Of a DNA stretch of 64,000 nucleotides, positions 415-57,818 are shown piece after piece (positions within the stretch are counted from its first letter, which is position 1; every line of letters starts with the position of its first letter). The notes beneath the pieces were generated by a model. It had not been told where the DNA came from, did not search any database, and saw nothing but the letters and a program-made list of their open reading frames with translations. The stretch covers positions 15,376,001 through 15,440,000 of the forward strand of contig OZ059895.1 of NCBI GenBank assembly GCA_964057225.1. Direction: 5' to 3'. The stretch comes from Auanema rhodensis. Its lineage: Eukaryota > Animalia > Nematoda. The position numbers and the translations under genes were made by a program.

Positions 415-1907
415 TTACGTAAACGCAAAAGCATCTTTCAAAAAATCTTCCATAGCCGTCCTTGATGTTAATTCATTAAATACTCTTCTTTGAGTTGGAG
501 AAAATTGATATCGGGTCATATATATAAGGTGCTGATGGAATAACTGAGTAGAAAGCCCTAATTTTGATGTAATATCAATCTGAAACAATTTAGAACATTA
601 CCAAATTTCGATTTTAACATACGAAATCATTCACACATTCTGCAGGAGTATGGTCAAACCCGGCAAATAATGCTGGATTATATAAAAGTCCATTGGCCGA
701 CATTAGTCCTACGATTACTTTTGAATATGTCATTTTAAATTGAAACAAACCATCAACTCCGGTTCTTTCGGCGATTTCTAAAGCTTGGCTCCTAGTTGTT
801 ATGTCTCCATTCGCAATGATGGGAACACTGACAGAATCCTTTAATATTGTTTCTGGTTAAATTAAATAAACTGAGACCTAAGCATACTTTCACTATTCGA
901 ATAGCATCATAATCTACGGGTTCGGCTCTCTGATGCGGTGTGCGACCATGAACAGTTAAATGAGTAACTCCAGCCTTTTCAGCCTACAAATAACCTAATA
1001 TGAATATGAAAAACGTAGAAGTAATTACTTTTCTACAAAGATCAATTGTTCTCTCAAGAGGGTACTGAACACGAATTTTTAAAGACACCTGTGAAAAAAA
1101 GAAATAAAAAATATTAATTATTAATTACAAACTGAATAATTTGGATCATTAACAGCCTCTTTGGTTTGTCTAACAATATCAGCTAGTAATTCGGGTTTAT
1201 TGAGTAAAAAACTACCAAATCCTCTGGCTCGAACATCCCCTTTCGGACATCCACAATTTAGATCTACACCAGTGGAATGTCTTTAAGAATATTTTCAATT
1301 TGAGTACTATTTCAATAGACAAACTTGTAAACTACTTGAGCTGCAGAAGCAAAAATGAATGGATCATCAGCAGCAAACTGTACAATTAGTGGTTTGTCAC
1401 CTTAAAAAAATTAAAATACGACACATCTTATGAATTTTTAATAAAGAAGTTTGCCACGTTTCAATTTACTTCGTCTATGACTTGTTATGTTTTATTGTTA
1501 AAATTACAAGAATGCAACCGCTCCAAATCAAAGAGAAAAAAGAAAGAAATTTCAAACTTTTATCAACATTATTACGTCAAGTTATCTAAGTTGAAAGACT
1601 GAACTATTTCAAAAAAGATAAGAAATTTATGATATAACTAACTTGGAATTGTTGTGAATTCGCTTTTTCTACAATAATCTGATTCTAAAAAATTTTTGGC
1701 ATAAATCATAGGTGTATAACAACAATCAACATCATACTTGCGAACTAATTCTCGGAATGGTAGTCTATTGAATTAAAAATAAAGTAATAATAATATATAT
1801 TGAACTTACTTTGAATATCGAACCATGGGAGCTAAATAAAATAATGGCCTATCCTTTATTTCTTTTATGGATTTATCGCACACATCTTTAACATCTGAGC
1901 TATCCAT
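415..1907 (-). CDS. DUS4L: tRNA-dihydrouridine synthase, DUS4-like (multi-exon)
   Basis: Spliced exons give LAPMVRYSK.LPFRELVRKY, DKPLIVQFAA, GVDLNCGCPK, HLTVHGRT, PIIANGDI and GLMSANGLLYNPALF, which are Dus family motifs. ATG at 1907, TAA at 415-417. Confidence 0.88.
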
Positions 1908-4122
1908 ATTGAATATAAATATGGCTTTAAGGCAAAATGATTTAATAGCCGAAGGCAAAAGTCTGAAGATTAAACAGGTACTGTATAGAAGTTCGAGTTT
2001 TTTTGCGTACTTCACGTATTTGACTTTTACTTTCTGAATTAAGGTCTTGTATATTATGAATAATTCGCTAATTTAATCTAATAAAAGCCAAAAATAGAAA
2101 TAAAAACATCAAAAAACTTATCGGAGGCATCAGTTTTATGATTTTTCTCTTACAGTTTTGAATGTGATAGCATTATTACGCTGTTAGCCGCTTGCAAATT
2201 TTTCTCTGTTTCTCTCGAACAAATCTTATTTCATTCTGCAAATTTGAACACCTTTGTGCTTTCGAAATCTTTGCCGACTATTCGAACTACTACCATCTCA
2301 CTTGTTGTAATCTTTCCATCTGCATCTCATGACCAAAGGGCTTGGCTTTTGTAGGGGCATAAAACGTCTTTTCTCCGAAGAATCCTGTTCGGATCCTAAT
2401 GTAATCGATTGTATGGATTCTGGACTGTTTCTGTCTTGTTTATAGCTGTTTCCTAGATATTCTCTCCTGGTATATTTCATCGAAAGAAAGCATTTGTCCA
2501 GTCTCCGGAAGCTTAATATTCCTAAGTTTACTATTAGCCTAGCTAAATCATTTTAATAACTGTTAATTAATGATTTCTTTTCTATTTTGTTCAATTATAA
2601 GACAGAGACCTCCTTCTTGAAGATTCACAGTTTTTATAACCAGACCCTACATGTAGTGATGTCGTTCTTTCACCATGACCCCAAAATTGGACAAATGCGA
2701 CGTTGTCTTACCTTTGATCGATTTTTCTTTAATTGTATACAGTTACTATTAATTCATTATAATATTAACTTCAAAGCAATTGAACTATCAATAACATGAT
2801 ACAGTTTCTTTTAATTTTTTCAAATTTACTTTCTCGTGTTTATATTTACTTTATAATTATCTTATTAAGTGGTACCAGTTCATGTGACCATCATCATCAT
2901 GATGTTGATGATAATATGTTAAACCTTGTCACTTATCTAAGTGTTGAATGATCATTTTTTTGAATGTTCAGACATTCTTTTGCAATAGATTTCAATATTC
3001 TTAATGGATGACAAGTCTTTTTCGAAGTCATTACGCATGTTTCTTTATCTATGCAACTTTTCTTCCGAATTTCGCAAGGCTGCGACGATGACGATCTATC
3101 CATCTTAGCATATCCCAACGTTCTAGATAATTCTCCCTTTTCGCATACGTGTCTCTAGCATAAGCGACCTTTTTTATATTCAGTTCCGATACGCAGTTTG
3201 GCTCTAATTCAGAAGCGGGTTTCATTCATCCAATCACAGTTAGGTGACAAGACTTCTGAAGAGAGAATATGAATTCGTGAGAGAAAAGTAAGGGGTCATC
3301 TTGAAAAATGAATGCGCAATCGCGCTACTTACAACCCCACAACCACCTTCCTACTTCGGGCTAGAAATCGATCGAGGATCTTTCCATATATCGTCAAACC
3401 GGAATTCTTTTTCATCTTTTGGTGCATACATTTACGTTGTTTCGGGTTCATCACTCATGCTCATCCTCATGTTTCCAGAAATATAAACGAGTATGGTATG
3501 TGTTAGTTTTTTTAGTAGTTTCAACAGACAACCCACCTTAGCATCACTTTGATATAAACTCCGGTCAACTGTCATTGTCTAGTTCATGACAATCAGTGAT
3601 CTCTCCCATTTTATACTTATACTACTTGTTTTTGTCTTTTCATGAGTTCGTTTCGACTTTCGATGTTTTTTTTTGGAAAATTGCGCACTCAATAAGGTAA
3701 TTCCTTATCTCTATCCATCGTGATTCTTATTCATTCTCACCTATTTTAAAATTGTTATCAGTTCATTCATTTATTAAGCTTTTCACATATTCTTTCATAA
3801 ATTGGAAAGGTTATATCATATATTTAACCAAGTTTCTTTTCTAACATATTCTTTACAATATTTTCAAAAAAAAAACAAAACAACAACAACAACAAAAGAA
3901 ATATTGGCATCGGGAAAAATTGAAACATGTTATCAGATTTTTTTTTATAATTTCAATATTGTTAGTTGAAGAAGGTAGAGTGTGTAAATTCGTTTTTTTT
4001 ACAATTGTTGAGTCCATTGATTGTCTCGTGCCTTGATTACACCTGTTTTCAACTTTTATTTTTGATAATTGAAGTTTTATTTAGATTAATGAAGAGACTA
4101 TTATCATATTCCGTTTGTTAGA

Positions 4123-7100: not shown

Positions 7101-10100
7101 TTATGAAATTCAGATTTTCAACTCGTTTACCGAAGATATGAATGTGACTAGATTATCAACATTATCCAAAGATTCCAATGCTTTCTTCGAAACATTAGAT
7201 TCCACTAATCCCCCTCTTCTGCGATCTGGCAGACTCACCAACTTAGGTATGTGTACAAATGGCTGAAACAATTGTATGCCTCAATTTAGGTCGTATAATG
7301 TATATGCCTGAAGCTCCTTGCTCTCACCCATATTGCTATTTAGGATTAGACTTGAAATCTACAGGTATTTTATTTTACTTTCTCGTATTTCACGTTTATG
7401 CTAATAGTGCGTGGCGTAAAGCCATATTTTATTTTATTTTAAGTTGCACTTCAACGCTAAGCGGTTGTTTTCATTCTGGTCTGCAACCGGTTTTATCTTT
7501 TTTGTTTCAGATGGTCAATGGTTTGTTCACGGTTTAACTTTGCCTGCAAATTTGGCTGAAGTTGACAGCTATCTCTACAAGAAGCAAAGAGGGAAGTTCG
7601 ATAGCTTAGTTAAAGAAGGCAAAAACATCATCAACACTACAATAGTAGTTGATACGGATAAAGCAAAAAATATCAAGGTTTTTTTGAATTATTTAACATG
7701 TTTATATTTGAAATAATGATAGATCGCTGCAACAGCGGAAATGGTTTGGCCTCGCTTGTTAACTCGCAACTCGGTACACTTTCCATTGACAGCTTTAGGG
7801 AATTTTACAGTATATTACATATGAGCATGATAATTAAATAATATTTAACCATTTAGATTGTTAATTTAACTCTGTCAAATCCTACGGCTCTACCAATTGC
7901 TGTTCAAGTTATACCCCTTGTAATTTATCCAGACGCTGAAGCTGCCGTGGAATTTTTCAAGGATCACCTGCTTACGCCTTTAACATCAAATGTATTGTTT
8001 TATTGGTACAATTTTGAATTTCAAAATGATTTTTAAGGTTGAAATGAATGAAACATTGATGTTTTCATTACGAGATACCGAACTTTTCACTTTGAAAAAA
8101 GATAGTCCTGTGCCCAAGTTACGAGAAGAATTGGAAGCAGTTGTAGGCCAGAATGTTCCTAGGTACCCCGATTTATCATTTCAGGAAATAATTAACGTTT
8201 TATAGATTCACTCTTTCGTTATTGCTCAAACCTCATCAAAAAGTTCGCTTACGCTTAGGTTTTCTACCAACTGATTATGTACTTCGATCTTCTCTTCTGT
8301 TAATAAGGTGAATATAATCATATTTTATCTGTTTTTATATTTAATATTTCAGAAATAATTTAACTATTATTGAACCTGTTGTGCTATATGGTCGAGGAGC
8401 TAGAATTGATATGAAAATAGAAGATATAGAATCTCGATCTAAAAAGCCTTTGCTATTTGAAATTCGTCATGACCATCTGTCTGACTGTAATAATCCTAAA
8501 CGTGAGTACCATAAAATACTTCTAAAAATATTTTTTGTTTTTGTTCAGGGCTAATGCATAAGCTCAGCTCAACATTAACGGTACGTCGTCCGTTTTCCGT
8601 GTCCAACACAGGGGAAGTACCATTTACTGTTGTCAGTATGAGCATTAATGGAATTCCATGTGAAAACCGTGGGTTCCGGATTCTCAACTGTTATCCATTC
8701 CGGTTACAGCCCAATGAATCCTATGCTCTGGAAGTAGCGTACGTTATAATTTTTTTTCCTTCTTTATTTATTCTCATTTAAGGTATACACCTGATTTTCT
8801 AACTACAACGAATGAAGCTGATCTCCAGCTCTATATGCACATGAACGGAAGCTCCTGGTCATTCCCATTAGCTGCTACGGTTCCTAGCGATATGATGTCA
8901 CGTTGTCATCGAGCTCTTCCTCGTCCACCTTTCGAAAATCTGATGTATTATAGCTGCGTTACTGCTCTAATGTAAGTTTACACTTCTTAATGATGCTTTA
9001 CATCTGTATGCTTTGCAGATTCTGTCTTGTATGTGTACTTGCGTGTGCATACTTGGAAGGTGATCGAGCTATAACTTGTGCCATTCGTGAACAACACACA
9101 AGAACTGTCGTTTTCGATTTACGCGGTGTTGATCGCCCTAAACCGAAAGAACAAAGAACATTTGGTAGGATAAGATTTTTTTTGATCATTGGTGATTTAA
9201 AAAATGTTCCAGACTTCTATGACTATGCTTGGCCTTCACAAATAACACCATCGCCTAATGCTTCAGTGTTTACACATGCATTCTTTGGAATTGCCAATGT
9301 AATAGTTATGTGTCTTCACTACTTCAGAAGGTCTTTCTTAGCATTGAAAATGGATAATCATCTTCGAACAGCTATGGTACGTGCTGTAATACAATTTTTG
9401 GTCAACTGCCTTTTATTTTCAGAAGAGTAGGGAGATGAACAGAGAGCAGAATCTTCAAAAGATCAGAGGTAATAAGAAAGGTGGTCACGATAATGATAAG
9501 TCTAATCCTGATCATAATAAGGACAAAGGAAAGGATAAGAAAGGTAAATCCTAAGCTCTAGCATTAGGCTTAACTTGTAATTCATATACAGATCAAGATA
9601 AATCAGCCAAAAATAAAACTGGCTCTCAGCTTCAATCACAACAATCGCAACAGCAATCTTCTAGTGCTCAACTGCCGAAAAGGACCCAGAACAATAACAA
9701 ACTTACGTAAGATGAAGCATAATATTTCCGTATTTCATATTTTTTCTAATATTTAGTGCCAAGCTTTCTGTTTCTCCCAAGCCCGTTCTAGTTAATAAGA
9801 CAAATCAGACAAAGGGAGTGAATAAGGAGAAGGAGCCTCAACGAAAGAAGAGTTCAGCCAACTCCGATAATGAGAGAAGAATCCTTAAGACTGAACAGCT
9901 TATGGATGGAACAGCTGGCCCTGACCGTAAGCGAGAGAATGTAGCTACTAAGAAACAAGCACAGAAAAGTATTACTTATTAATCACTTGCTGATTACAAA
10001 ATTAAAATTTCAGATACTCGCTTACAAAATGCGAAGGCTAAAAACTTGCCACCTCTGGAAATTCCTTCTGCGGAAGCTCATTCATCCATCTCAGTTTCTA

Positions 10101-17000: not shown

Positions 17001-19182
17001 TGGTGATGACGAGTTCTACAGCTGAACATAATATGATTTGGCAAGGAAAAGCATCAGCTGCATGTTCAGCTTCAAAAATCATCAAGCATGAGGAAGAGAA
17101 AACGTCAAACTGGCTATTCACTATGGGCTGAATCATAGGAAGTACTAATTAGGATGACAAGTAGTCGGGAAGCATCTTCAACCACAAGAAATAGCAAAAC
17201 AGTTCTAGGAATAATAAAAATAATAATAACATGGAGCGAAATGTCAAAATTTATGTATTGGTGAACCAGCATGACTAGAGCTTATTCTCGATTCTGGATG
17301 TGCTACACTTTTCAGTGAATATATGACGAGATAGAGAAAGAGAAAGAGATGCAGATGCAGATTGGATGAGAAAGAGCTATAGAAGGTACATGAATTCAAA
17401 TGTGAATTAGAGATAAATAGAAAATGAGTTGTCTAACAAGTAAAAGTAATAAAACATGATGTGAACTAATGACAAGCTGTCACCCCTGTGTATACATCAG
17501 GTGAACATCCGACGGATCTGCGTGTCAATGCTTTAACTTTCTACGCAATCCAAGTTTCTTATCTATGTATTAATCGTTGTGTGTGACCACCACATGAATC
17601 AGCTCTAAGCAATTGCTTGAACACCAGCAACAACAACAAATTGCTTTTCCAACTTACGTCGTTCTTCCTGCGCTTGCTCTAGCTGCTGGAGTTCTTGAGG
17701 CTGTGCTTACTTTCGTAGCTGTTGGCATGCTGTAAAAGGTGAAAAATAAATAAAATAATGTTATAAGATCAAATACTATAAAATAAATATTATGTTATTC
17801 ATGTATATTTCATATATAAAAGGATTTACGGAGAAAAAAATTCGAAAGAATGCTAAGAAGAGCATACTGCGTACACTACGTGCCTGATGTGTATATTCAG
17901 CTGTCATTCTTGAAACATGCATTACTATTCAAATCAATTGTTATATAAAATAATTAATTATGCATGAATATATTATATGAAATAATTATTATTTCATAAA
18001 GATGTTATAAATTTAATTATTTAACTTATTCTCACTATAGCATATTTAAAAAGTCTATGAAATAATTTAACTCACGGTGGAATAGTCTTTTTGGTTGGCG
18101 CTTGCATCTTTGTTGCTCCAATAGGACGAGCAGCTACGGAGCTTGTTTTCTGAAATATTCAATTTAAAAAAATGAAAGCTTAATTTTAATTTTGTGTAAT
18201 GGCAATGCAACCTGTTTAATGCTGATTGTTGGGCAAAAAAAAAGCTAAATCAACACGGCCACGTGACAACGTGGAATAAACTACACGTATGCAAATTTTG
18301 ATGTCATTTGAAATTGAAAGTGAAATACTCTTATATGTATGCTAATGAGTGAGATAAGCGTATAACCTTTACAGAAGCTGATTTTGCAGCTGATACAACT
18401 GGAGCAGCTTCTGGATTCTCAGATGGATCGGCAGGAGGTTCAAAAGCTGATTCAATTTTGTTTTCCTTAGAATACAGAATTACTACAGCGAGTTAGAATG
18501 CTAATCAAATACCTCTGAGCAGGATGTTTGAGTTGGGAACGGAGTTGGTTCTTCGGGCAGTGGTTCCTGCAAGTTGTCGTCGACAGCGGACGTCGGAGTA
18601 TTCAATCCGTGCTCGGAGCCAGCTTCCGTTTGCTCTCTTGTGTCGTTTGCATCATCAGTAGATCGATCAGTTGGTTCAGATATCAAATCAGATTGCACAT
18701 GATCATCTGACAAGTCTCGTGTTTGATGAGCATCTTCATTGTCTGCATCAAAATGACTTTCGGCATTCTGCTCAATTTCACGTTCCATCTGCTCAAAAAG
18801 CAGAATTTCGTTTTTCTCATTGTGCCCCATGCTGCCAGTATTGGATGTTTCAAATGCTGTAGTCATTATTTCGCTGGAAATATTCAAACTTTCGCTTCCT
18901 GGATCAGCAGCGAGTGATGATGAATGTGATGATAAGGATAATAGATCTGCACGATGATCAGATTCTAATGCAGTTTCAAGCTGAAAATATTAGATGAAAT
19001 GCTGATGTAGAGTAGCACAAAACAATAGATCAAAGAGATATTTGGACGATTGGTCAGCAAGAAAATGAGAAAAATTCCAAAATAACATGATTGTAGTGAT
19101 GAATACAAGGTTGACAGTCTAGCCAACTAATTTTATAACTACGATGTTCATACATACATACCTTTCTGGTGGATCGTCTTCC

Positions 19183-31702: not shown

Positions 31703-32225
31703 TAAATGAAGCAAACTGTTATTGCTTCTTCTACTTCCACTTTCAAATTCAAAATATAATTTCTTAATACTCATCTAGATATTACCGTCATCTGTATACA
31801 TGCACCGAATCCACATTGTATTTATGCCTAGAAGTTTCAATAATTTTGATATTTACAATTTTGCTCATTCCCCTTTTCATTTTTTTTGTGATAACACCAA
31901 ATCTTTCTTTTGTTTCAGAGCAATGTTTTCATTTTTTATCAAGGACGATGTTTATATTTATACTCCTCTATACATATATGTACGTACAATATGTTCATAG
32001 TCGCTTCATAGATTTAATTTTTTTTTACTTTCAAAGGTTTTACATTTGTATTGTCTTCTTCGCTTTTGTGTGCGTTAAGCCATTTATGAGCATTTTATTC
32101 ATTTGATGCCTAAACTTTTTTGAAAAAAAAATATTTTAATCTTTTATTCCGTATATTGGTATATTTACCTGTCAAGTAGTATCTGAAACCAAATGTTTAA
32201 TTTTGAAACTATTTCCTTTTCTCAG

Positions 32226-33163
32226 ATGTCTGCTCCGGTTCTTGCTCTTACGGGTCCTGGTGGTGTTAATCAAGATGATCAAGTTCTTGTAGATGCATTA
32301 CCTTATTTGGATACTGATTACAATGAGCAAGATCGACAGCTTGCTTTGAAACTTATTGAACAAGAGTGCAAAGTTTGTTCTTTTATAATTGTCAAGCATT
32401 ATAAGTTTGTGCTTCAGATTTTCCGACCAACAAAAAATTATTTGAAACACTTAGCTGTTCCGGATTTTGATATATTCTTATCCCCATGCATGCTCAAAGA
32501 ACATGCTCGTATGGCTAAGAAGCAGGTGGGAATTTGTTGTTGCACCGAAATTCAATTCTTTTTTTTTTCTAGGATATGCCAAAGTTAGACATGACACGAT
32601 GTGAAATTCCTTCACCAGCAGGCACGTCTCGAGCTACTGATCGTGATTCTTGGAAGAAGGTAGCCAATTCATTTTCTACATTTGCTTAAGTTTTGTCCTT
32701 TTAGAGCATTAAGAACGCAAAAACCCAAAATGAACATTTGGTCATGAGACAAATTAATTTGGAGTTAATGAATGATTATGCTGGAGAATGCTATCTTCGA
32801 AGAAACAAGACTTTAGAGGAAGAACTGACTCAAGCTGAAACAATTCTGCGTCATCATAAAGAACAAGTAATTTCATTTTTGGCATTTTCTTCTAAAATTC
32901 AGTTTTATTAGATTATGGAGGTCCACGCTCATCGTAAACGGTCACAATTAGACGCTGGAAGATTACTAAAAGAGAAAGAGCAAAACTGGGTATCTATGGT
33001 TACAAATAATTATAGGTAAATATCATAATTCCTTATTCTTCAAGTAATTTTAAACTTTTTTAGGATGGAAATGGCTATTAATGATTTACAACTGTCGACA
33101 GCTGAAGATGCTAAGCGTTTAAAGTTGGATGACTCTCACTTCCAACAGAAACAGTTATCTTAA
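32226..33163 (+). CDS. bcas-2: Pre-mRNA splicing factor SPF27/BCAS2 (Prp19 complex)
   Basis: VDALPYLD, LIEQECKIFRPTKNYL, MPKLDMTR and INLELM motifs. ttttctcag sits directly before the ATG. TAA at 33163. Confidence 0.92.
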
Positions 33164-34987
33164 GTCATCGTTGTTATTTTCAAGATTTACCGTTGTTGTT
33201 ACCGACTGATCATCTTTTTCATCCCGGGCAATTGCTTGAAACGATCTCTGATTGATTTTACTGCCCAAATATGCAATTTAAACTATTCCCATACAAATAA
33301 ATTCCAAGAATCAAACTATGCTTTTCTCTTTCTCATATTAACATGCAAGTATAATCGCGTTTACAGAGGGTGTTGACGGGTGGAATTTAATCTGAGCAGT
33401 AAGTGAGCCAGTTCGTGATATTTCTCTCTAGTGTACATGAAAAACGGAAATGATGTGAAATAAATGAAAGTTGAAACATTCAATTCGAAGGTGTAAAGTG
33501 TTTGTCTGATGGTTGTCTAACTGACATGTATTGCTGAGAGATAGCTGTGTCACATTGCTTTTGGTTAAGCTAACGCTTTTCCCATGTTTTCGATGTCTTG
33601 GCATGCCAATAGATGTAGGAACTTCCTCTCATTCAATGAAACAGCTGTTATTCTGTATGAAAACAGCTTCACTTTCAAACTTGGTCCCGGAATTCGTAAA
33701 TAAGACATTAGTGCCGTTCAGTTTTCTTTATCTTATCCTCTCCTCTTTCTGCTGTTCTTGTCTGTTAAACACTGAAAGGTGTTCAAATTTATTTCAGTCT
33801 TATACTCGCTTGAGAGCACGAAGATTATGGTTATAAGATTAGAAGAAGAAGAAGGGACGCGTTATCTGAAGCATCTTTTTCAGCCACTAGCTCTTAGAAA
33901 CTGTTTGTCTTAGTCGTACTGAGTTTTCGCCCTTTTAATCAACATACCTGATAGAAATAACTAGCATAAATAGCTAATTAGTCATATTTTCTTGTAAAAT
34001 TTCTGTTCTTTTCTTTCCCAATTACTCATATTCCATTATTTGAAAAGCAATTAGTCAGAAATGCATGTTTTCATCATACCACTATTCCATACTTCCTCAT
34101 CTAATTCTCGCCCAATCTTCATTTTCCCGTTTATTTCTTCAATTTTCGAAATATTATAAGAATTGATTATTTCATATAAACATACAAAAATAGTTTTACC
34201 TTTCACTAAGAGAGACGAACAAGATTTTTAGCAGAATAAGTTGTAATAACTGGTTCTCAACCATCTCTTTTTTTCCTTTTTTATCAACAAATTGTGCCCT
34301 TTACTCTTTGATATCGCTGTCTTTATGTTCTGGAGTAGCACATGCTTATCACCAATTAACTACATTCATAACACACTATCCATATATATGTTTAGGAAAT
34401 TTGACCTCTTGCACTGCTAGTTAGAATTCAACTCTTAATATTTTAGAAAAATCAGACCTTTTCAAGATGATAATGCTGCTTTTACAGCTTTTACGTGATT
34501 TTCCTATGCATATAAAACATCAAATAATTAATATTTATTGTTTTTATAATGATTCTATCGTTGAACAGTTACGGAGAGAGGATAGATAGATAGATGATTG
34601 CTGAAGGTCATCAAGCCTGGTGATCTTTCGCTCTCTATCTATCTATCTCTCTCTCTCTCTCTCTCTATGTATTTCAGCTCGGAAACTGATCATTCTTTAG
34701 CTAAGCAGCATCTCCTATATTGTCACACTAAATTTGTATCACTTTTTTCATGTTTAAATACAATTATTTTCTATTTTAATGACTAATTTAAGCATTGTCT
34801 CGGTTATTTCTATGCTATTTCAAAATATTCTTACATCTCCGCACACTAAGTATTTTACTATTCATATTCTTTAATCCCCGATGTTACAACCAATAAGCAC
34901 AAATTGTGATCAATGCCTTTCTTCAAAAATTCATGAACGTCCAAACACCTCGATGTATTCATTGTTTTCAGATCCCAGAAATTGGCC

Positions 34988-37900
34988 ATGAATGGCCCTA
35001 CTGGCCAACAGCAGAATCCGAAAGGTGAATTTTTTTACAAACTAATAATTTTTGATTTGTTTGAAAACTAATTATTGAAAATCAAGAAAGATAGTAAGTG
35101 AACTATCCTGACACTAATCCACAATATATGAAAAAACCAACCGCTCATTGCATACAGAACGTGGAAAATGAAACATTGTTGTCCCTTTTTTCTTTATTTT
35201 ATCGGCACTTTTCGGTTTTAGTGATAACTCACAAAGATAAAATAAATGAATAACTAAGCAAAAATAGAAGAATATGCGAGTGTTTAACTAATCCTAACTA
35301 ACGCCAGCTGAAGAAAGAAGCCTAAGTTGCCATAGGAAATATTTTTTAAAAATAATCGATTTTCTTGTCGTTTTCTTCAAAAGCAACGAAATGAATTTGA
35401 ATTAAAACTTAAACGTCAAGTTTTCATTCTAAGTTTCGCCTCTATTCTTGACCTTAAAAACATTTTAACAGCATTCTGGTCAAGAACAACATGAAACGAC
35501 GCCTATCGAATGAGGGGAGCGTATGATAGAGTCAGAGAAATAGACTTATCGGATGAAGGCAGAGAACTAGAGCAATGTAACTCATGGAAATGAACCATTG
35601 AGGCAGTTCGACTTTTCATGCTTTGCTTTATTTTTCTTTTCATTCCATGTAATTTCTTCCTTTTCAAACATTCCAATCATTATTACATCAATTTTCAAAT
35701 TTTCTCTAGAGGTTTAGTAGTCGGCCGTTGTAAATATTTGAAAACTTAACACAAAAATCTAAATAGTTATGTATATCTATTGTTATTATTTTGGAAATAG
35801 ATTGCTTTAATGCCACAAAAACTCTTTTGTAAATGATATTCATCACGCCTACAGGTGTTATATGATAGCTTTGGTCAAATTATACGCTTTAAATCTTCTT
35901 TTTCTACCTTGTTTATTTTAATTTTCGTTGTTTTCAAGTGTTTCAGAATTAAATTAATGTTTTTATTTTATAAAATTTGTGGTTATTTCATAAAGGAAGC
36001 ATTTAAGCTCTTTTTCTTTGAATACTATTGAATAAGTTTTTCGTACCTCATATTACTATTGATTCATTTAGTCAGTTTCTACTCTCAGCGATAACAGGTG
36101 TGTTATCTATGAAAATTGTTTTTTTCCGAGTATTTGAAGAGACACAAGTTTATTGTGAACTATGATGAGTTTCCTCACATTCACAGATGAAAAACTGTGT
36201 GAAATGTACTTTTCTTCTTTAATACCAACGCATTGTTGACATTCTGTAGTGCTCATTGCCTTTAGCATCTTTGCAACTTATAGAATAGCCATCCTACCAG
36301 CTGTTTGAACAACGACTGTTTCAGCTCACGCTGTCTCTTTTTTTTTCAAAAAAAGAGGAGCCAAAAGTTGGATAGTCAATTCCTTTCTTTTTATTCACAG
36401 AATCCGCCTTTACGCTGCCTTTCATCATCAGTCATTTTGTTTTCTGTTCAGCATCTTCTTCGTATTCTATCCCTCCTCATAGAACAATATGTTTCATTGC
36501 AATATGCGCTGTCGTTATTCTGGCTCCTAAAGCTTTTTTGAAAGATACTACTTGAAATGCATGTCCCAATACTCAGTTTTCGCTTATCGCTCACAAGCAT
36601 TTCCACAAACTCATCTTTACTCAATTTTTTTTCAATCTCAATGGCTTCTTCAAGATATAGCCGTTTCTATGGACATTAAAACTGCCACAATTTGTCCTGT
36701 TGAAAGTGAAGGCATTGGTTTATGGAAGCACGCTGTGGGATTTCAAATTGGATATATGTCCATATTGTGCATTATCAGACATTTCCAATCATATTCTGCC
36801 TCTTCCATATGCTGTATTATATATTTTCCAAAAGGCCTCGCCATCATTCACTAATATCTTTAATATTTCTTGCTCCCATATCACTCATTTTATTGAATTA
36901 TGCTTGCGTTGATTTACTTCAGAAAACAATTATTACCTATTTACACACAAATATCGCCATTTTTATTTAGAAATGTATAGCTTTTAAAATTTTCTTGTTC
37001 CAGGACCCGTGAAGGACAACATGGGTGTTGAGTCTTACGTCGTATCTGTCGTAAGCTCGGCCATCGTTGTCTTTCTGAGCTATTTCCTAGGCTTATTTGG
37101 ATATTCATGGCTATGGATTTGGATAATAGTGGGCCTTAATTTGGGCAAAAATTACCTATGGAAGAAGAGGGAGAAACAGTAAAAAATAGTAAAATCCGTT
37201 TTAAAACAGTTTAATGTTATAGTTTGATGTCTCTCCGTGCTACTTCTCTCCGAGAACGTGAAGTTATCATGGCTCAACTTCAAGATCTACCAGCTTGGGT
37301 TCAATTTCCGGATACTGAGAGAGTCGAATGGATGAATAAAGTTCTTATTTTCTTAAATTCTTTTAACATCTACGGAATTGCAGGTTATACTTCAGCTTTG
37401 GCCATATATTGGAGAGTATGCTAAAGTTTTCATGACTGATTTCATAATACCACAAGTGAAAGTAGGTTTTTTTGCTTGTTTTTCCTTTTCTGAATGCAAC
37501 CGCTGATTTTGATTTGATGAGTTAAAATGTCGTCACGGCTCACGTCACGCTTAATTTGAAGCCAGCTTGCATCTGGTATATTATGCTAATTTTCTTTGTA
37601 TAGCATATAATTATAGTACGATTTTTCAAAAATAGAAATCTATATATTCTCGATTTTTCGTCTTTTTTATTATATTTCTCTTTATAGGCTCAAATGCCAG
37701 CCATGTTTAAAAATTTTAAGTTCACTAAAATGGATATGGGTGATATTCCATGTAGAGTTGGTGGTATTAAGGTAATTCCATGTTATTCATGTTTTTCATT
37801 CTACAAGAAATTTTCAACATACAGGTCTATACCCATAATGTTGGAAGAGATAGAATTATTGTGGATATGGATGTAGCTTATGCTGGGGATGCTGACTTTT

Positions 37901-40900
37901 CAGTGTCATGCTGTGGATTTACCGGAGGAATGAATAATCTTCAGGTTTTTATAGCGTTTGAGCAGATAATGGAGTGAATTATATTCAGTTTTCTGGAAAA
38001 TTACGAGCTGTTCTAAAGCCATTACTTCCATATCCACCAATGGTTGGTGGTGTATCTGGATCTTTCTTGGAGATGCCTGTAGGTTATCATAATCCTTGAT
38101 ATTGGATGCTTCGTTTTTTAAGAAAATAGATTTTAATCTCACTGGTATGGGTGAAATGGTCGAATTGCCTGGACTGATGAATGCTATTAGGACTGTTGTG
38201 AATAGCCAGGTATAGTCTTCTACATATCATTGAGATCTTATTGATTGTGTTAAGGTTGCTGCTCTGTGTGTTCTTCCTAATGAAATCGTGGTTCCATTAG
38301 CGCCTGATGTTGATGTTACTCGTTTATTCTTCCCTGAACCTGATGGTGTCATCCGTCTTAGAATAATTGAAGCCAAGAACTTGGAAAATCTTGATATTAC
38401 TTTGTTCAAAAAAGGAAAGAGTGACCCATATTGTGAGATTCAAGGTGAGGATTATTCATTTAACTCATTTTCATGACTTTCTTTTGTAGTTGGATCACAA
38501 TTCATGAAAACAAAAACAATTGATAACAACTTAAATCCTATTTGGAATGAGTATTTCGAAGCTGTCGTTGATCAAGCAGACGGTCAGAAACTTCGCATTG
38601 AGGTATTCGATGAAGATCAAGGAAAGGACGAAGAATTAGGTCGCTTAAGTTTGGAACTCAGCAAGATCCGCAAATATGGTTCAATCGATCAGGTTATTTC
38701 CAATATTTCTGAACTGTTCTGACCTTTCTAGTATTTTAGTGGTATGCACTTGAGGGATGTAAACACGGAGATATTCACATTCGAGCCACATGGATGAATT
38801 TATCAACTGTAAAAATATACAAATATACTTAAAATAACTTTAGTTTATTTATTTTTGCAGGATCTTCGTCACTTAGAAATTCGTGAGCCGGAATACTTAC
38901 AATCCGACAAGCCTGTTCATCCAGCTTTGTTGATGGTCTTCATAGACTCAGTATCTGAATTGCCCGTAAGTGATGTTTATAAGAAATTGGTTTGATTGAT
39001 AAATAATGTCTTCAGTATCCAAAATCAAAATTAGAGCCATCACCTTTCGTTGAGGTGACATTAGGAAAAGAAATTCAAAGAACTCCAGTTAAGGTTTGTG
39101 TTTTTAACATTCTTCTCACAATATATTTAAATTTTCTATATTTATTCAATCTTTTAATCTCTTTCCATCTCTCTTATTCCAGGTAAAAACTGTAAATCCC
39201 TTATATCAGTCAAAGTTTATGTTCTTCGTGCGTAATCCCGAAGGTCAAGATCTGAAGTTTGAGGTGATTCATCAAATCATTGTGAAGCAGACACATTAAT
39301 ATCTGCTAAATCTCCTTCATTGTTTTAGTTTGAAACAACAGTTTTTGCTTTTCTTGATTGTTTTACAACTATTTACGCTGAATACGAATATCACTTTTTC
39401 AGGCTTTTGACGATGGCACTCGGCGTAGTTTAGGAGCTTTGACGATTGGCTTGAACAGCTTGATGAAAGAACCTTCTTTGGAATTCTATCAACAAACTTT
39501 CATGTTGACACACGGTGTACACCAAAGTCCCATCGTGGTTACCGTCAGATTAAGGGTTCGTTTTGAATTCCCATTGTATACATTTCACTCAACGTTTCTG
39601 AAATTTCTTATAATTCACGAATAATTTGTCAACACAACTTCTTGCCACTCCATTCTATGCCTGTATTTGCAACATTTAGAGTTTACCAAATAAGTTTTTC
39701 ACAGCATTTGAAAGTTGAGAGCAAAGAGCTCAATGGCTAGCACGTGAATATAAACTTTGAAAAACTTTTTCAAGTTCAAAACGAGAGCAGACCATTTATT
39801 GAGAAGCATGTTTGCACGTGTATCATTCGAATTTTATTGCAAATTGTTTTGTTTTGTAAGCTTTGATCAGTGAAGGTATCATGCAGTTAAGTGGGTGTGG
39901 CAGAAGTGAAGTTTAAGTTCACAGAAGGAGTTGTTTAACAGGTTTCTATGAAAACGGCATTTTTCAATGTTCGGTTTTAATTAGAATTTTTTGAGATGAT
40001 GAACTTTAGACACTACAAAGCTATTTAAGAGCTTTACAGCTCTGAATCCCTCTCTCTTTATAGGGTCTGGCGGCTGTTGATCCCAGCAAGACTTTTCTGA
40101 CTGCTGACAAACCGCCTAAGGTAGTAGATTTGCATCCCGTTGAGAGTGTTATAGCAACTCACATATTGTCTCCTGAACGCAGTTATGAGAACAAAGAACT
40201 GGAGTTTGATTCGAAAGAAATAACAATTGATGAAGTCGCTGAATCTTCGTCGTCTACTATTGTTCAGCCAGATATCTCGAGTGCAGTGATTCCAGATGAT
40301 ATAGCTCTAGCGGTTGCTGAGCCTGCTCAGCCGCGTCAACGTATTCGACCAACAGCAGACGATATTGTCGAGATTGCTTATTAGAATCTGTGTATCTAAC
40401 ATTGCTAACATGCTGAATTTCCATGCTGCTTGCCGTTTGCTCATGCGATTCTCACCTGATTTTGCCTAGTCGACATGGCTTTTCTTTTTCTACCAAAGTC
40501 TGCTTCGGGTTCTACAAGCTACGGCTTCTTACTACGTCATCTATTTTTCCATTTATTCATTTACGGTGTTATTCTTTCTTTCTTTCGGGCCATAGGATGT
40601 TTTCTGAGCTTTTTAGTTGCTACATCGGTGTTATTGATTTATGAAATAAGATGATAGTTAATATAAGTTATTGATAAATGTCACTAATTTTACGTTGTTG
40701 TGTGATTCTGTTGATGTAGGCATTAGTATAGAACGTTAGTATCACTCTCAAATCTCACGTGTTCAGGCACTAGCACGAGGACAACGACATAATAACAAGG
40801 GAGGAGTGTTGGACGATGAAACTCTGCGTCATTACGGCAACGGTAAGCTTCTATTCAGAACAGCAGTAGTAAGTCTATTACGTATTTAGCTTCTCATATT

Positions 40901-43938: not shown

Positions 43939-43946
43939 TTATATAG
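43939..43946 (-). promoter_or_regulatory. Putative TATA box of the second secreted-protein gene
   Basis: CTATATAA on the minus strand ~60 nt upstream of ATG 43878, the same spacing as in the paralog. Confidence 0.45.
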
Positions 43947-46026
43947 TTCATATTGAACTTCAATTGATCTTACCAAGTAACAAATGTTAATTATTCCTGA
44001 TTTAGAATTGAACTCAAATATTACGGAAGAGAAGTTAGTTTAAGATCAGACAGCAATCTATGACTCAGATTGCGAGGTTTTGCGCGCAAACTTCCTTTCT
44101 TACTCACTCTTGTGGACATTGCCTAGAAGTAAGAATGCTTGAAGTAAAACACGAACATCAACGGCCAATTCTGAGTAAATATTATCTGTATACATTTATT
44201 ATTTCTTTTAACTTCTTCGGTAAGATATTTATAAAAGATTGCCAATATACAAAGTTCATTTTATAAAATATTTATCGATTGAATAATTAGCATAACAGCT
44301 GATGAGCACTTCACGTGCAGACGTGCATACCGTTATTTCATTTCAGCTTTGCACACTTTCAAGTTTTGTTCACGACACGATAAAGCATATAGGTAAGTGC
44401 TTGCTTCTAGTTGATGTCGAAAATCGTTTTTGTTAAGCTTTTACTTGAACATCTTCTACATGTAATAGCACACTATAGCACAGATTATAGTTAGAGTTTA
44501 CATCAGATATGATGTGCATGTCTCACGACGTGGCGTATACTCACGCAATACTTCATTGCTTCTTGCTGTTAGCGTGCTTAGTGGTTGCATTCCATTTTCT
44601 TTTTTTTCTTTTTGTTGTTGAAAACTTCAAATTTAACTTCATATTAACAACATACTAAAATAGAATATTGTTTTGAATTGGCAGGAAAAGCAAAATTAGA
44701 ATTTTGAAAGTAAAAAAAATAAATTTGTAACTTCATTATAACAACTGAGATCAACCTGAATGTAGTATGTTTCATCCATCACTACTGATCTAAGAAATTG
44801 CATTTACGTAATGATATTATGGCAGAAACTATAAGAATATCTACTCAAATACTGCTGATTTGCATTCTTTAATTTTTAATCAAATTAACGTTCAATAATC
44901 AAAATGACAAAGTACAAAAGTAGTGTTGTGGACTTTTTTCTTATATGAAAAGTTCAAAGTTTTATAGAAATGCTGCTGTATATAGTTAAGCTGCAGATGC
45001 TTTGAGATTTACAAGGAAATTACTATAAATAGTATGCATAATACTGTTACACTATATAGAAAGACATCTGAAATCAAAGTTTTCAAGCTTAAAGATCTAT
45101 TTCAAAACTTTATTTTTAGCATAAAAAGTATTTTTTCAAATTACTGCAAATAGAAACGTTGTTGGTTGAAAAGATTTGTGTGTGTTCATTTCAATGTTAT
45201 CTAACTTAGTTTAAACAAACAATATGACATTGAAATTATACAAAAAAAAACAAAAGAAAATGCTGAACCTGATCATCAATGCTACACTAAGGCTTTTTTT
45301 CCAAAAACATGTGCTCCAGAATGATGAAACGATAAATATCCATCAAACAATTTCTATTTCAGTGTTGAAAAGCTAATGTTATTCAAAAACAGGAATCGTC
45401 AAAGCTCAGAATTCATTTCTAAGTAAGAGAAGAGAGAACAACGGATTTAGTTGAGTTTCAATTATTTCATGCAAATCTGATCTGTAACTATAATGCTGTA
45501 ATTATCAATCTATTATCAACACCATCAGCAGCATCTGCAGCATCATCATCGGAGGAAACACAACGAATTCCATTGCTAAAAGAATGAAAGAATATATTTA
45601 TAATTTGCGAATTTCAGCCTGATATATCCATTCATAATGACGTTTCTGTAGAAAGTTTTCATTTCCTATGCGCCAGGTTTGTGTGTACCATTGTTGCATT
45701 TTAAAGCTTGAATTTGATTTTCAAAAATATTATTTTCATGACACTTCTTCAACAAATTTTATATTTGAAGATGTTAGTAATAGTGTAATTCAATTTTCAC
45801 AAATTATGTTGGTAATATGAGCAGGTGAACTTTTATGATTTAATCATAATAACTATTTTACCGTGGTTTAAATACTCAGTTACTGAAATCATACCATACT
45901 TATAGAGCATTTTACCACTATTAGCCTCTCTCTCTCTTCCTTTTCTAAGTTTTTTCGAGGTTCCCCACCACTTCCACTTGTTTTTTTGTTTGTTAAAAAA
46001 CTATTATTTTTGTAAAAGTTGCAACT

Positions 46027-46636: not shown

Positions 46637-46667
<31 letters not shown>

Positions 46668-47525
46668 TCTCTATCTCTTCAATGAAATTTTATAGGAACA
46701 AGCTATTAGTGAATGTCTTCAATGGAAAACATACACCATTTGTAATACTCTTTCTAGTATCAGCAGGTTTATATTTTGTTCTTTATGAGCCAACCATTAT
46801 ACTTGATCGAAAAAGTGGATTAGCGTTTTGGGATCCTCTAATTTATGACAATGCTTCATCTAAAGTAGGTTTCATCAAGCATTATTAAACTTTACGTTTC
46901 GTTTTAGTATTTTAGTAAATCGATTACATTCAACAACACCGTTGTTGTATCATTTAACAGCATCTCAAGCATTATTCTCTGTTTCAGCATCTCCAAACAT
47001 TTGAAGGAAAATTTTGGTTCAATGATAGATCGACGTCGTCAACTGACGGTATGTAGCATGACGTCAGCCTGGCTATTCAACTTCATCCTTTTCAGCTTTT
47101 CTTCCAATGTTTAGCTGTAGTTAGTTTGTGTAACATAGGAGCATCAATATATCTCTTCAATTACTTGTTCTTCTCTGAATCTCCACAAGTTCTAAAAAGA
47201 ATGGCTGGTGTTATTTATCAGCTCTGTACATGTATCTTCTAAACTTTGATAACATCAATGATTTTATGCCTAATTTCAGGTCTACCTCCATACATCTATA
47301 TGATTCTTAATCATTCAATCCGTCATGGAATTATCAAAATGTTCACAAGATACAATGCAAAACCATTTTTTTCAACCAGTAATTTCGACATAAATCATTC
47401 AAAACTCTAATAATGCTCATTCAGGCGCTAGAACAACCACACATGCAAGTTGCTCCACTACACAAGTACAACGAAAATCTAGCATATCTCCTGTAATTTT
47501 GCCAATAACTAATAATGATATTTAG
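46027..47525 (+). pseudogene. srt-class serpentine chemoreceptor copy 1; open frame but a damaged intron-2 acceptor (possible pseudogene or sequence error)
   Basis: MERLIRYG..DPLYNCS, PAYKIM, FCD.P.FIYIAG, FWDPLI and LPPYIY.ILN motifs. The acceptor before exon 3 reads tttcg|ATC (46253-46260) with no AG. Confidence 0.6.
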
Positions 47526-48842: not shown

Positions 48843-49416
48843 ATGGAACGTCTTATCAGATATGGAACTATCACTGATGATCCTCTCTATAACTGCAGGT
48901 TTGATCTCTCCTCTCTCCTTGTTCCTTCATCAAATCCTCTTTCAAGTGCTCGAACTGCAGAAATGATTGCAAAAGCTTTAACGGAACCTGCTCCTATTTA
49001 TGGTAGTGGCTCTTGTATAATTGGTTTGTTCAATCTTGTAAGTGATTTTCCACACTTGTTAGCCTTACGACATATTATATTTAGATTCTCTTCATGCTCT
49101 GTATCAAAGTCATGCTAGAGCCTCCTCACATAGAACATCCAGCTTACAAGATTATGATTGCTATTTCATGTTGTGATATGACTGGTGTTGTTTGTAACAG
49201 CATATTATTAGGTATAAGTTGCAAAATTTAAAAATTTTAATAAATCAATATACTGTAGGCATGGTTTGTTATCAAGGAATAAGCTTCTGTGATTCTCCTA
49301 ACTTCATCTACATTGCTGGGATGATAGGTACCAGTGCTTGGGTTACAGGCTCAATGTTATCATCTGTCTTGATAATCAATCGAATGGTTGAATTGAAATG
49401 TACCCAGTAAGGACTC

Positions 49417-49473
<57 letters not shown>

Positions 49474-50328
49474 CCTCTCTGAACAAAATATTTCAGAAAC
49501 AAGCTCATAGTGAACATCTTCAATGGGAGTTACATATATCTTACAATTTTGTTTGTTATATTATTCGGATTATACTCTTTGATGTTTCAATCAGCTCTTA
49601 TATTTGAACCAAAAAGCGGTGTAGCATTTTGGGATCCTCTAATTTATGAAAATGCTTCATCTAAAGTAGACTTCAACACCTGAAATCATCGTTAATTGAA
49701 TGTATCATTTCAGTATTTCTCTCCTATTCTCTTCTTCAATAATACCATCGTTGTATCATTCAACAGCATCCTAAGTATCGTTCTATGTTTCAGAATTTCA
49801 AAGCAATTACAGCAGAACATTGGCTCAGTACTATATCGACGTCGTCAAGCAATGGTGAATTACACCAGTCTGAGCTTCAACCCTCTAACATACTATTTTC
49901 AGCTTTTCCTTCAATGTTTAGCTATAGTTAGTTTATGTAATTTTGTGGGTTTAGTTTATGATATCATATATATGTTTGATTGTCCACTGATTATTCAACA
50001 AATAGCTGGAAACTTTTACCATTTATCAACAAGTAGCATGATTCATCCAGCATTCCTCATCTTTTAATCTTTTGTTTAGGCTTACCTCCATATATATATT
50101 TGATTCTTAATCGTTCAATCCGTCTTGGAGTTATCAAAATGTTTTCAATATTCAAACCAACAACTATTTTTCCATTAAGTACTTGTATAATTCTATAAGT
50201 TTTATGATGATCCTTATTCAGATAATAAGACAACCTCAGTTTGGTCTAACCAACGTCCCCAAACAAATATTGAAAGAAATCATTTGAGTACAATTCTGTC
50301 AACTTCTAATAATAGAAATTACTCATGA
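48843..50328 (+). CDS. srt-class serpentine (7TM) chemoreceptor copy 2
   Basis: Same Srt motifs. The frame is continuous after removing GT-AG introns. TGA at 50326-50328. Confidence 0.8.
49421..49480. repeat. (CT)n microsatellite in the homologous srt intron
   Basis: The same intron carries (CT)n in copies 1 (~46637), 2, 3 (~51940, degenerate) and 5 (~56660). Confidence 0.9.
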
Positions 50329-51362
50329 ATCTATAGCAATTATATTAACTAGTAATTTGAATATATGGATATACTTGTACACGTGCAATCTCATCACGTC
50401 AAACTTTTCATTTTGAAGATATGAAATGACGTAAAGCGGTTGGTTATTGAAATATTCATTTTATAACTTTTATTACAAAAAAAAGAAATTAATAATTCAA
50501 AAATTTTCATTTTTTTCTTTCAGAAAACTGAAAAGTTATAAGCCGAACGAAGTTCTAATGAAAGAAAACTCAACTAATCAAAGTGACAATCAATACTACA
50601 GCGAATGCGAAAGGATCAACCCTTCTTCAAATGTTATTTTTGGAAAAACAACAGAATATTTTAATTTTCATTGTTTACTAATTTTGTTTATTTGTAATTT
50701 TTTTAAAAATAAAATAAAAACATTATGTTGAACTCAAATCTTATAAATATTAGATTAGTAGTGATTTGTGGAACTGTTATATCATATATACAAAAATATT
50801 TCTATTTATATATAATATCATGATGAGTTGAAAGTAAAAATAAATTTAAATTAATAAAAATGTATTTATAATTGTTATTTTCATACGTAAATATCAAAAA
50901 TTCTAGTAGATAGACCCTAACTCAAAACAGGATATGATGAAGGTGGCAGAGGGTGGGGTAGACGGCGCTATATATACGCACAGCCATCAGAACTTATGCT
51001 CTATTGTTTTTGTGATAATATGCTTTTGATATTATCAAATACTAATCTATTTATTGAAAATATAACCTTGTTTTATATTTCTTGTAGCCATATAATACAA
51101 AAAGCTGTAGAATATTGTATGAGAACTAGCATACTCTACAAGGATTCATGACCATAAAACCAAACTTGAGTTGTATAAATAGTCAAATTCAACTTATTTC
51201 AGTTCATAATTTCAATTACAAATTAGAAATACCTATGTGGCAAGCAATATAATTAATGATCTCTGTTATATTATTTTAACTATTACGCTTTATTCACATA
51301 ATTTCTCTTTCTCCTTCTCCTTCTTCTTCATCTTCTTCCTTTTTTACAAAATCTTTCACAGA

Positions 51363-52939: not shown

Positions 52940-52993
52940 CAGTTAGGATACAGTACAACTACAGTACAACTACAGTAAAATACAGTTACGGTA
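52940..52993 (+). repeat. Short tandem TACAGTA(CAAC) repeats
   Basis: tacagtacaac tacagtacaac tacagtaaaa tacagttacggta. Confidence 0.7.
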
Positions 52994-55153: not shown

Positions 55154-55392
55154 AAGAAAATTTCATTTTCATTGTTAAGTTCGTTCCAATTTTTTTCAGG
55201 TGAACATGTAACTTGAAAAACCTATGTGGATATGTTACTTGAACGATCATTCTACGTGATTACGTGATCATTTCACGTGAAACTATTACGTGAACATTCC
55301 ACGTGCGTGGATATGCAACGTGTTCATTTCACATGAAATCTTTCAAATTTCTTTATGAATATACGCAATAACATAAAACGGTTGATTTTCTT
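55040..55392 (+). repeat. Duplicated 3' segment (last exon + ACGTG array + AACGGTTG), copy A
   Basis: Near-identical to 57448-57818 by direct comparison. Confidence 0.85.
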
Positions 55393-56659: not shown

Positions 56660-56707
<48 letters not shown>

Positions 56708-57561
56708 TCCTCTCTCTGAACAAAATATTTCAGAAACAAGCTCATAGTGAACATCTTCAATGGAAATTACATATATCTTACAGTTCTGTTTGTTATATTA
56801 TTCGGATTATACTCTTTGATGTTTCATCATCCAACTCTACTTGATCCAAAGAGTGGTTTAACTTTCTGGGATCCACAAATTTTTCAAAATGCTGCATCTC
56901 AAGTAGGATTCTAAAGTTGAAACTTCAACTTAACACCATTTCAGTACCTTAACCCTATGCTTGTATTCAACAACACCATTGTTGTATCATTTAACAGCAT
57001 TCTGAGCATTATTCTCTGTTTCAGCATCTCCAAACATTTGAAGGAAAACTTTGGCTCCATGATAGATCGACGTCGTCAACTGACGGTATGTAGCATGACG
57101 TCAACCTGGCTATTCAACTTCATCCTTTTCAGCTTTTTCTTCAATGTTTAGCTCTTGTTAGTTTAAGCAATATAGGATCTATATCATATGTTTTATATCA
57201 TTTCTTTGAACAATATCCCTTTCAAACTATAGGTGAAATTGCATATCCATTATATACAAGTAGGTTTTAGTTTTCTTATTCATTACACATTCAGAACTAT
57301 AGATCTACCTCCATACATCTATTTGATTCTTAATCATTCGATCCGTCAAGGAATTTGCAAAATGTTCACAAGAAATAGTCCAAAAGTCTATTTTTCAACC
57401 AGTAATCTTACTATTCTACAAAATATATTATTTGACTGATCATTTTAGCCATTAAAACAACCTCAACATGGTCAAGCGGACGTCTACAGACGCATCCGAG
57501 ATCTTCTGTTCTTAGTTCGGTTGCCCAAGATTATGTAGTAGAACCCAGAATGAATAATTAA
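56047..57561 (+). CDS. srt-class serpentine chemoreceptor copy 5
   Basis: Srt motifs. The last exon is nearly identical to copy 4. TAA at 57559-57561. Confidence 0.8.
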
Positions 57562-57818
57562 AAGAAAATTCCATTTTCATTATTAAGTTCGTTTAAATTT
57601 TTTTCATGCGAACTTGCAACTTGAACATGCAACTTGAAAATGTAACTTGAAAATGTAACTTGAAAATGCTATGTGGATATGTTACTTGAACGAACATTCC
57701 ACGTGAAACTATTACGTGAACATTCCACGTGCGTGGATATGCAACGTGTTCATTTCACATGAAATCTTTCAAATTTCTTTATGAATATACGCAATAACAT
57801 AAAACGGTTGATTTTCTT
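57448..57818 (+). repeat. Duplicated 3' segment, copy B
   Basis: Near-identical to 55040-55392, with different copy numbers of the internal AACTTG and ACGTG units. Confidence 0.85.

Follow-up and report, generated by a model that had tools for sequence, protein, structure and literature searches.

A dispersed element in introns and spacers of the nematode Auanema rhodensis resembles a fly-type initiator and downstream promoter element cassette

What kind of signal would place the same eight-letter word repeatedly in the introns and intergenic spacers of a nematode? In a 64,000-nt stretch of Auanema rhodensis DNA (assembly GCA_964057225.1, contig OZ059895.1, positions 15,376,001 to 15,440,000 of the forward strand; hereafter the window), the word CAACCGCT had been singled out as the core of a bipartite element, in which a Myb-type site is followed on its 3′ side by a cluster of ACGT words (the original prediction). 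Read on the opposite strand, the same element takes on a different and more familiar appearance. We propose that it is a compact, TATA-less, TFIID-type start cassette for RNA polymerase II (Pol II), composed of an initiator (Inr) and a downstream promoter element (DPE) with upstream sites for basic helix-loop-helix (bHLH) and basic leucine zipper (bZIP) factors. On balance we consider this assignment probable, based on the letters of the boxes, their rigid spacing, the one-sided arrangement of the upstream words and the absence of TATA.

Enrichment of the core word was evaluated with 100 dinucleotide-preserving shuffles and with a third-order Markov/Poisson model of the 64-kb window. Eight exact sites of CAACCGCT were found versus a mean of 0.61 in the shuffles (maximum 3; none of the 100 reached 8), in keeping with the excess estimated earlier (7 observed versus ~0.5 expected). 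The Markov-3 Poisson P of 1.4e-7 remains significant after correction for ~33,000 words, and the word tops the 8-mers of the window once simple repeats and one coding palindrome of the srt genes are set aside. All seven exact sites of the original prediction were recovered and are non-coding as claimed, but the eighth (40309, minus strand), overlooked at the time, lies inside an esyt-2 coding exon. One-mismatch variants of CAACCGCT as a class occur in the window at chance level, with 17 further sites versus ~17 expected. Several of the variants listed by the original prediction nonetheless carry the partner elements described below (12463, 18208, 44580, 55377 and 57803), whereas the one at 14974 does not; partner elements are likewise absent at the variant 46599.

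The reverse complement of CAACCGCT is AGCGGTTG, which contains GGTTG followed by T, G or C at all eight exact sites, a match to the DPE consensus RGWYV. Alignment of the copies on the AGCGGTTG strand revealed a TCATTT whose A lies exactly 24 nt before the core box at 12463, 23967, 35138 and 47659, and GGTTG thereby occupies +28 to +32 relative to the initiator A at these four sites. The same offset is taken by ACATTT at 37497 and by TTATTT at 7460, and at 50435 and 44580 TCATT is one base more distant, placing GGTTG at +29. The copies, with strands given for AGCGGTTG and positions relative to the predicted start (+1), are as follows.

P1, 1515..1585, minus strand: cassette with AGCGGTTG at 1522-1515, predicted +1 at 1546 in a poor initiator (TTCTTT), and TGACGTAA at -31; in a ~245-nt DUS4 intron, sense, next exon beginning at about +144.
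P2, 7385..7467, plus strand: cassette with TTATTT, +1 at 7436, AGCGGTTG at 7460-7467 (+25 to +32) and upstream CACGT/CGTG words; in a ~144-nt TMEM131 intron, sense, acceptor tttcag ending at +75.
P3, 12463..12580, minus strand: cassette with TCATTT (A at 12494), TACGGTTG at +25 to +32, and three TCCACGTG E-boxes plus TGACGTG at -21 to -79; in a ~155-nt TPST intron, sense, which it almost fills, next exon at +72.
18208..18295, minus strand: weaker cassette with ACAGGTTG, a T-run at +1 (18239) and three CACGT-type words at -25 to -49; in a ~215-nt intron of a gene with tau/microtubule-associated protein (MAP) repeats (ptl-1-like), sense, acceptor at about +90.
P4, 23967..24052, minus strand: cassette with TCATTT (A at 23998), G at +24, AGCGGTTG at +25 to +32, and ACGTG at -38 and -47.
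P5, 35138..35172, minus strand: cassette with TCATTT (A at 35169), G at +24 and AGCGGTTG at +25 to +32, lacking an upstream ACGT cluster; in esyt-2 intron 1 (1979 nt), antisense, with 147 nt separating +1 from the exon 1 end.
P6, 37497..37556, minus strand: cassette with ACATTT (A at 37528), AGCGGTTG at +25 to +32 and GTGACGTGAGCCGTGACG immediately upstream; in a 226-nt esyt-2 intron (37462-37687), antisense.
40309..40316, plus strand: non-cassette copy of AGCGGTTG in an esyt-2 coding exon, with neither initiator nor ACGT cluster.
44520..44587, plus strand: weaker cassette with TCATTG 1 nt farther away (GGTTG at +29), AGTGGTTG, and CGACGTGG at -28; upstream of srt copy 1, same strand.
P7, 47590..47666, plus strand: cassette with TCATTT (A at 47635), AGCGGTTG at +25 to +32 and four ACGT words at -12 to -40; in the spacer behind srt copy 1, on the array strand.
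P8, 50375..50442, plus strand: cassette with TCATTT 1 nt farther away (GGTTG at +29), AGCGGTTG at 50435-50442, CACGTG at -30 and CACGTC at -15; in the spacer behind srt copy 2.
55260..55384, plus strand: AACGGTTG variant with several upstream TCCACGTG/TTACGTG words and no initiator at the fixed spacing; in the spacer behind srt copy 4.
57690..57810, plus strand: AACGGTTG variant, a duplicate of the 55260..55384 copy; in the spacer behind srt copy 5.

The bare copy at 40309 is taken here as a chance or coding occurrence and not as a cassette.

The significance of the spacing was evaluated across the whole window. A histogram of distances from TCA[GT]T to GGTTG shows a peak of four at +28 and two at +29, versus a mean of 0.34 over the other 56 spacings. 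Among the 19 CGGTTG sites of the window, 4 have a TCATT that puts GGTTG precisely at +28; with a per-position TCATT frequency of 0.0029, the binomial P is 2.5e-7. No TATAWA was found within -45 to -15 of any of the 11 cassettes, and the 21 bases between initiator and AGCGGTTG are unconstrained. GC content falls from 0.61 at +25 to +32, a value partly set by anchoring on the motif, to 0.22 at +33 to +44, where T makes up 0.52. The CATT of the initiator provides a Y-R-N-T start with T at +3. A G is present at +24 in four of eight cassettes; a preference for G at this position was reportedly described by Kutach and Kadonaga. A separate peak of GACGY at +24 was dismissed, as it derives from conserved srt coding sequence.

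Fly promoters are characteristically marked by the DPE, which in humans is rare or ill-defined. The fly DPE, RGWYV(T), is located at +28 to +32(33) from the initiator A with strict spacing, and a one-base shift cuts its activity several-fold (PMC5580651). Furthermore, a Drosophila motif described as directional, precisely positioned, DPE-like and co-occurring with INR, KCGGTTSK (DMp5), was reported by FitzGerald et al. 2006 (PMC1779564), who also list TCATTCG as an INR variant. The worm form GCGGTTG[T/G] matches KCGGTTSK in five of the seven non-coding exact sites. The worm cassettes thus resemble Drosophila Inr+DPE promoters (KCGGTTSK with INR/INR1, TCAGTY/TCATTCG) in their letters, with GGTTG fitting RGWYV, in the +28 to +32 position, the single sharp spacing peak and the directionality, and in the absence of TATA, the frequent G at +24 and the presence of upstream activator sites. 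They differ in that the host is a nematode, only the CGGTTG form is enriched, and most copies are intronic and some antisense.

Two further observations concern the boxes themselves. CATTC or CATTG comes immediately after GGTTG in four cassettes whose TCATTT is weak, displaced or missing, giving words of the GGTTGCATTC type (1507-1522, 18200-18215 and 37489-37504 on the minus strand; 44580-44595 on the plus strand). This extension could be a second initiator-like word or could define a sub-type of the element. In P2, a second, inverted CAACCGG word is present at 7484-7491, 17 nt downstream of AGCGGTTG, and the two related words face each other.

With the core properly read as AGCGGTTG, the ACGT and E-box words lie upstream of the predicted start and not 3′ of a Myb site. 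Across the 11 cassettes, on the AGCGGTTG strand, 23 ACGT words occur in -110 to -5 versus one in +35 to +140, bearing out the one-sidedness noted earlier; random sets of 11 windows contain 2.7 ± 1.9 such words, and none of 20,000 sets reaches 23. The words are positioned between -79 and -12, except for two within the spacer between initiator and box. TCACGT/ACGTGA is the top upstream 6-mer, present in 8 of 11 zones (P 1.4e-8), and CACGTG, TGACGT and TACGTG also recur in these zones. From their letters, the words would represent E-box and cAMP response element (CRE)-type sites for bHLH and bZIP factors. Overall, enrichment, spacing and one-sided ACGT words agree with the idea of an oriented protein-DNA module of several parts, under selection in non-coding DNA, and it is the identity of the parts that changes.

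In the orientation proposed earlier, CAACCGCT would be a Myb site, or a proximal sequence element (PSE) of the SNAPc type, driving a small RNA gene, or else part of a structural site resembling the yeast centromere DNA elements (CDEs). We find this hardly credible. There is a likeness to a Myb site, a SNAPc PSE and yeast CDEI-II-III, in that CAACCG contains the loose Myb core YAACNG, CACGTG is the CDEI word and an A+T-rich stretch lies between them. Strand and spacing logic are wrong for these systems, however: AGCGGTTG fits KCGGTTSK and stands 24 nt after the A of TCATTT, a fixed-spacing partner on the other strand. The A-rich word AAAATGAA, previously taken for spacer, is the reverse of TTCATTTT and carries that initiator TCATTT on the other strand. 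Scans of the whole window at Rfam gathering scores and for tRNAs returned no match, and the ACGT regions share no sequence able to encode a common RNA. A SNAPc-type promoter in the original orientation thus finds neither a conserved downstream RNA nor an Rfam family, whereas a looser, piRNA-like idea, which needs the opposite orientation, is weighed below. Nothing supports a centromere or CDE-like role, and no sign of a structural function was seen.

The same Myb likeness could instead belong to a composite site that does not initiate transcription (an enhancer, insulator or architectural site), for example with a Myb/SANT-type protein bound to CAACCG beside a bHLH or bZIP factor, the resemblance to Inr+DPE being coincidental. 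Consistent with such a site are the fit of CAACCG to YAACNG, the enhancer-like placement in introns, whichever way the host gene runs, and the lack of an RNA start among RNA contigs, which cannot show starts. Set against these, the rigid 21-nt gap, GGTTG at +28 and the eight-letter fit to a fly DPE-like motif make coincidence very unlikely, the ACGT words are strictly one-sided, and enhancers that bind TFIID-like factors usually initiate as well. We therefore regard a non-initiating composite site as improbable.

Could the copies simply share descent? All-against-all BLAST of ±300 nt around the sites detected no colinear similarity outside the tandem srt duplicates, which agrees with the original view that the spacers do not align and that the element is no recent transposon. 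Within the srt array, the 55377 and 57803 copies are 84% identical over 340 nt, with similarity ending near +40, and those at 47659 and 50435 are ~61% identical. P7 and P8 are paralogous, as are 55377 and 57803, and the copies therefore cannot all be counted as independent. When four srt spacers are aligned, TAAA.CGGTTG is the longest invariant run, in accord with the claim that the motif is kept behind the srt copies while their flanks diverge.

The BLAST result also led us to reject a transposon relic. A decayed mobile element more broadly, be it a miniature inverted-repeat transposable element (MITE), an introner-like insertion or the 5′ end of a long interspersed nuclear element (LINE) with an internal Inr+DPE promoter, has two attractions: fly LINEs carry internal Inr+DPE promoters, and the host introns have roughly the length of an ordinary intron plus 100-200 nt, as an insertion would produce. 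Yet only tandem srt duplicates align, neutral decay would not spare three short boxes at fixed spacing, and the ACGT cluster, being upstream of +1, is located beyond the point where a LINE would begin. A mobile origin is accordingly very unlikely.

The genomic setting of the cassettes was then considered. The six cassette-bearing introns measure ~245, 144, 155, 215, 226 and 1979 nt, supporting the original remark that motif-bearing introns are unusually long, as ordinary esyt-2 introns span 43-53 nt. For the sense copies, the next exon is 72-144 nt past the predicted start. Placement was fixed by translation for 1515, between the DUS4 exons encoding LPFRELVRKYDV...EFTT and GDKPLIVQF, and for 12463, between the TPST exons encoding ...AFITEVM and ITKNGEMASRICNKDPY. 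The srt-spacer copies lie on the array strand: the gene before them ends 130-350 nt upstream, and the next exon with a start codon follows after 0.7-1.4 kb. For the stretch 33900-39800, contigs from three spliced-RNA runs were available, and these resolve the esyt-2 gene as follows.

34972..39556, plus strand: esyt-2 mRNA, with exon 1 at 34972-35022 after ttttcag, then 14 GT..AG introns, from spliced RNA contigs.

The first intron (35023-37001) is 1979 nt long, and later introns are 43-53 nt except for those of 89, 139 and 226 nt. The contigs thereby show P5 and P6, the two cassettes that match best, to be intronic and antisense. One esyt-2 contig has a few extra letters at the start of exon 1, and the mRNA is therefore probably trans-spliced to a spliced leader. 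Two different continuations were observed from 39556, one corresponding to an exon at 40064 and the other unmatched within 33900-39800, which suggests alternative splicing of esyt-2.

As six cassettes are located in long introns, the notion of a promoter for the next gene fails for at least six copies. What is new here is that the cassettes lie mostly in long introns, in part antisense, and that in this window they do not serve as the chief promoters of the genes that hold them.

Several observations weigh against an Inr+DPE start cassette. The intronic copies are sense in DUS4, TMEM131, TPST and the tau-like gene and antisense twice in esyt-2, and no cassette is present at the true 5′ ends of DUS4 and esyt-2, which would be odd if the element were simply a gene promoter. 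Were internal starts to be used, the resulting truncated TPST or DUS4 proteins would be without essential motifs. No RNA contig over 33900-39800 falls on the introns holding P5 and P6, although such contigs miss starts and rare RNAs. At the level of sequence, an initiator is missing from the fixed offset in the copy at 1515 and in both AACGGTTG copies, and the generic DPE consensus RGWYV after TCAKTY gives no peak at +28 in the window, implying that only the CGGTTG form is used. Finally, the sample is small, comprising 8-12 sites from one window, some of them paralogous.

The same placement raises a further possibility, that the cassettes are dispersed minigenes for short capped RNAs or RNAs resembling Piwi-interacting RNAs (piRNAs), of the type known from Pristionchus. 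Pol II would start at the A of TCATTT and pause or terminate at the step from the GC block to the T tract, yielding a ~30-nt capped precursor, and a mature 21-mer would run from the U at +3 to +23, just ahead of the conserved block. Among P-type species, the loci of piRNAs lie within the introns of genes that are active, with sense and antisense orientations about equally frequent, and a step from high to low melting temperature marks the 3′ end of the ~28-nt piRNA precursor (Beltran et al. 2019, PMC6436959). The six intronic cassettes (four sense, two antisense), the CATT start of Y-R-N-T form with T at +3, the 21 unconstrained bases, the GC drop from 0.61 to 0.22 past +32 and the lack of any long RNA assembled from P5 or P6 are all compatible with such minigenes. 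In addition, the cassettes share with the loci of Beltran et al. 2019 the character of autonomous units, ~70-100 nt in size, that lie on either strand within the introns of expressed genes and have a ~21-nt variable body and a melting-temperature step near +30. They differ in lacking a Ruby or SNAPc-derived motif, in carrying E-box/CRE clusters instead, and in being found in part in chemoreceptor spacers.

The missing Ruby motif counts heavily here. No GTTTCA, the Ruby core, is present within -70 to -20 of any cassette, and the nine CTGTTTCA words of the window were rejected as Ruby motifs, being coding or splice-acceptor sequence. E-box/CRE clusters are typical of ordinary regulated promoters or enhancers, and we know of none at piRNA genes. 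Moreover, germline-active chromatin would not be expected in the srt spacers, and the DPE match by itself accounts for the +28 geometry. For these reasons a piRNA-like minigene appears unlikely, though not negligibly so.

Returning to the Inr+DPE start cassette, its predicted anatomy is tripartite. Farthest upstream, at about -80 to -12, would be one to four activator sites with an ACGT core (E-boxes of the TCACGTG type and CRE words of the TGACGT type); the initiator TCATTT would follow, its A serving as +1; and after 21 free bases would come AGCGGTTG at +25 to +32 (GGTTG at +28 to +32) and a T-rich tract. In the mechanism we envisage, bHLH and bZIP factors bound upstream would recruit TFIID, TFIID would touch both boxes at their fixed distance, and Pol II would initiate at the initiator A. 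As the cassettes are not main host promoters, they are taken as intragenic or spacer start sites. RNAs begun at sense copies may be trans-spliced to the following exon, 72-144 nt further on, the intervening sequence acting as the outron of an internal promoter, and antisense copies may serve as enhancer-type or non-coding starts.

The closest nematode parallel to such a role is offered by the starts of intragenic enhancers and alternative promoters in C. elegans, which use trans-spliced outrons. These too are situated in long introns, and the sense cassettes, 72-144 nt upstream of a 3′ splice site able to accept a spliced leader, are arranged alike. The C. elegans starts feature an Inr and T-blocks and no DPE, whereas in the cassettes the downstream box is the most conserved part. 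DPE and motif ten element (MTE) sequences were reported to lack enrichment at C. elegans start sites (PMC3730108).

Other features of the window were recorded alongside. Pfam searches on single exons matched only C2, BCAS2 and the tau repeat, and the GT..AG splice consensus is weak in this species.

15101-15316 and 18149-18989, minus strand: gene with tau/MAP tubulin-binding repeats (Pfam PF00418, E 9e-16).
32187-32585, plus strand: exon of a homologue of BCAS2, a spliceosome component.
47031, 49837, 52338, 54656, 57068, 59893 and 19793: sites of the CGACGTCG palindrome.
34622-34677, 46640-46700 and 49400-49480: examples of (GA)n/(CT)n microsatellites.

The long acidic, serine-rich upstream exon of the tau-repeat gene resembles a ptl-1-type projection domain; a protein-atlas search with the 162-residue open reading frame at 18504-18989 returned no usable match. 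The ~2 kb between the BCAS2 exon and esyt-2 (roughly 32900-34970) contain no evident gene, and no RNA contig falls in 33900-34884. The CGACGTCG palindrome is present at seven sites (14 over both strands) versus 0.6 expected on that count, and was rejected as a dispersed motif: six of the seven lie at the same place in six tandem srt paralogues, which identifies a conserved coding block. The (GA)n/(CT)n microsatellites are abundant, with AGAGAGAG counted 164 times versus ~10 expected, and recur in or near each srt copy.

If Inr+DPE start cassettes are indeed what recurs in this window, DPE-dependent initiation would have been retained in part of the nematodes and lost or blurred in C. elegans, and start sites could be predicted from sequence alone where trans-splicing erases mRNA 5′ ends. 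The intronic, partly antisense placement points to hidden intragenic initiation, in the form of internal promoters, enhancer-type starts or small-RNA units. A bolder proposal, which we put forward as a speculation with low odds of being right, is that this DNA-eliminating nematode uses fly-type Inr+DPE cassettes as autonomous mini-units, placed in introns and spacers on both strands, to produce short capped RNAs resembling piRNA precursors. Pausing or termination would occur at the +25 to +32 block, which is DPE-like and also resembles a pause button, together with the T tract, and E-box/CRE factors would replace the Ruby/SNAPc motif. Were this true, the mini-units would represent a second type of promoter for dispersed small-RNA genes in nematodes, one that was built independently.

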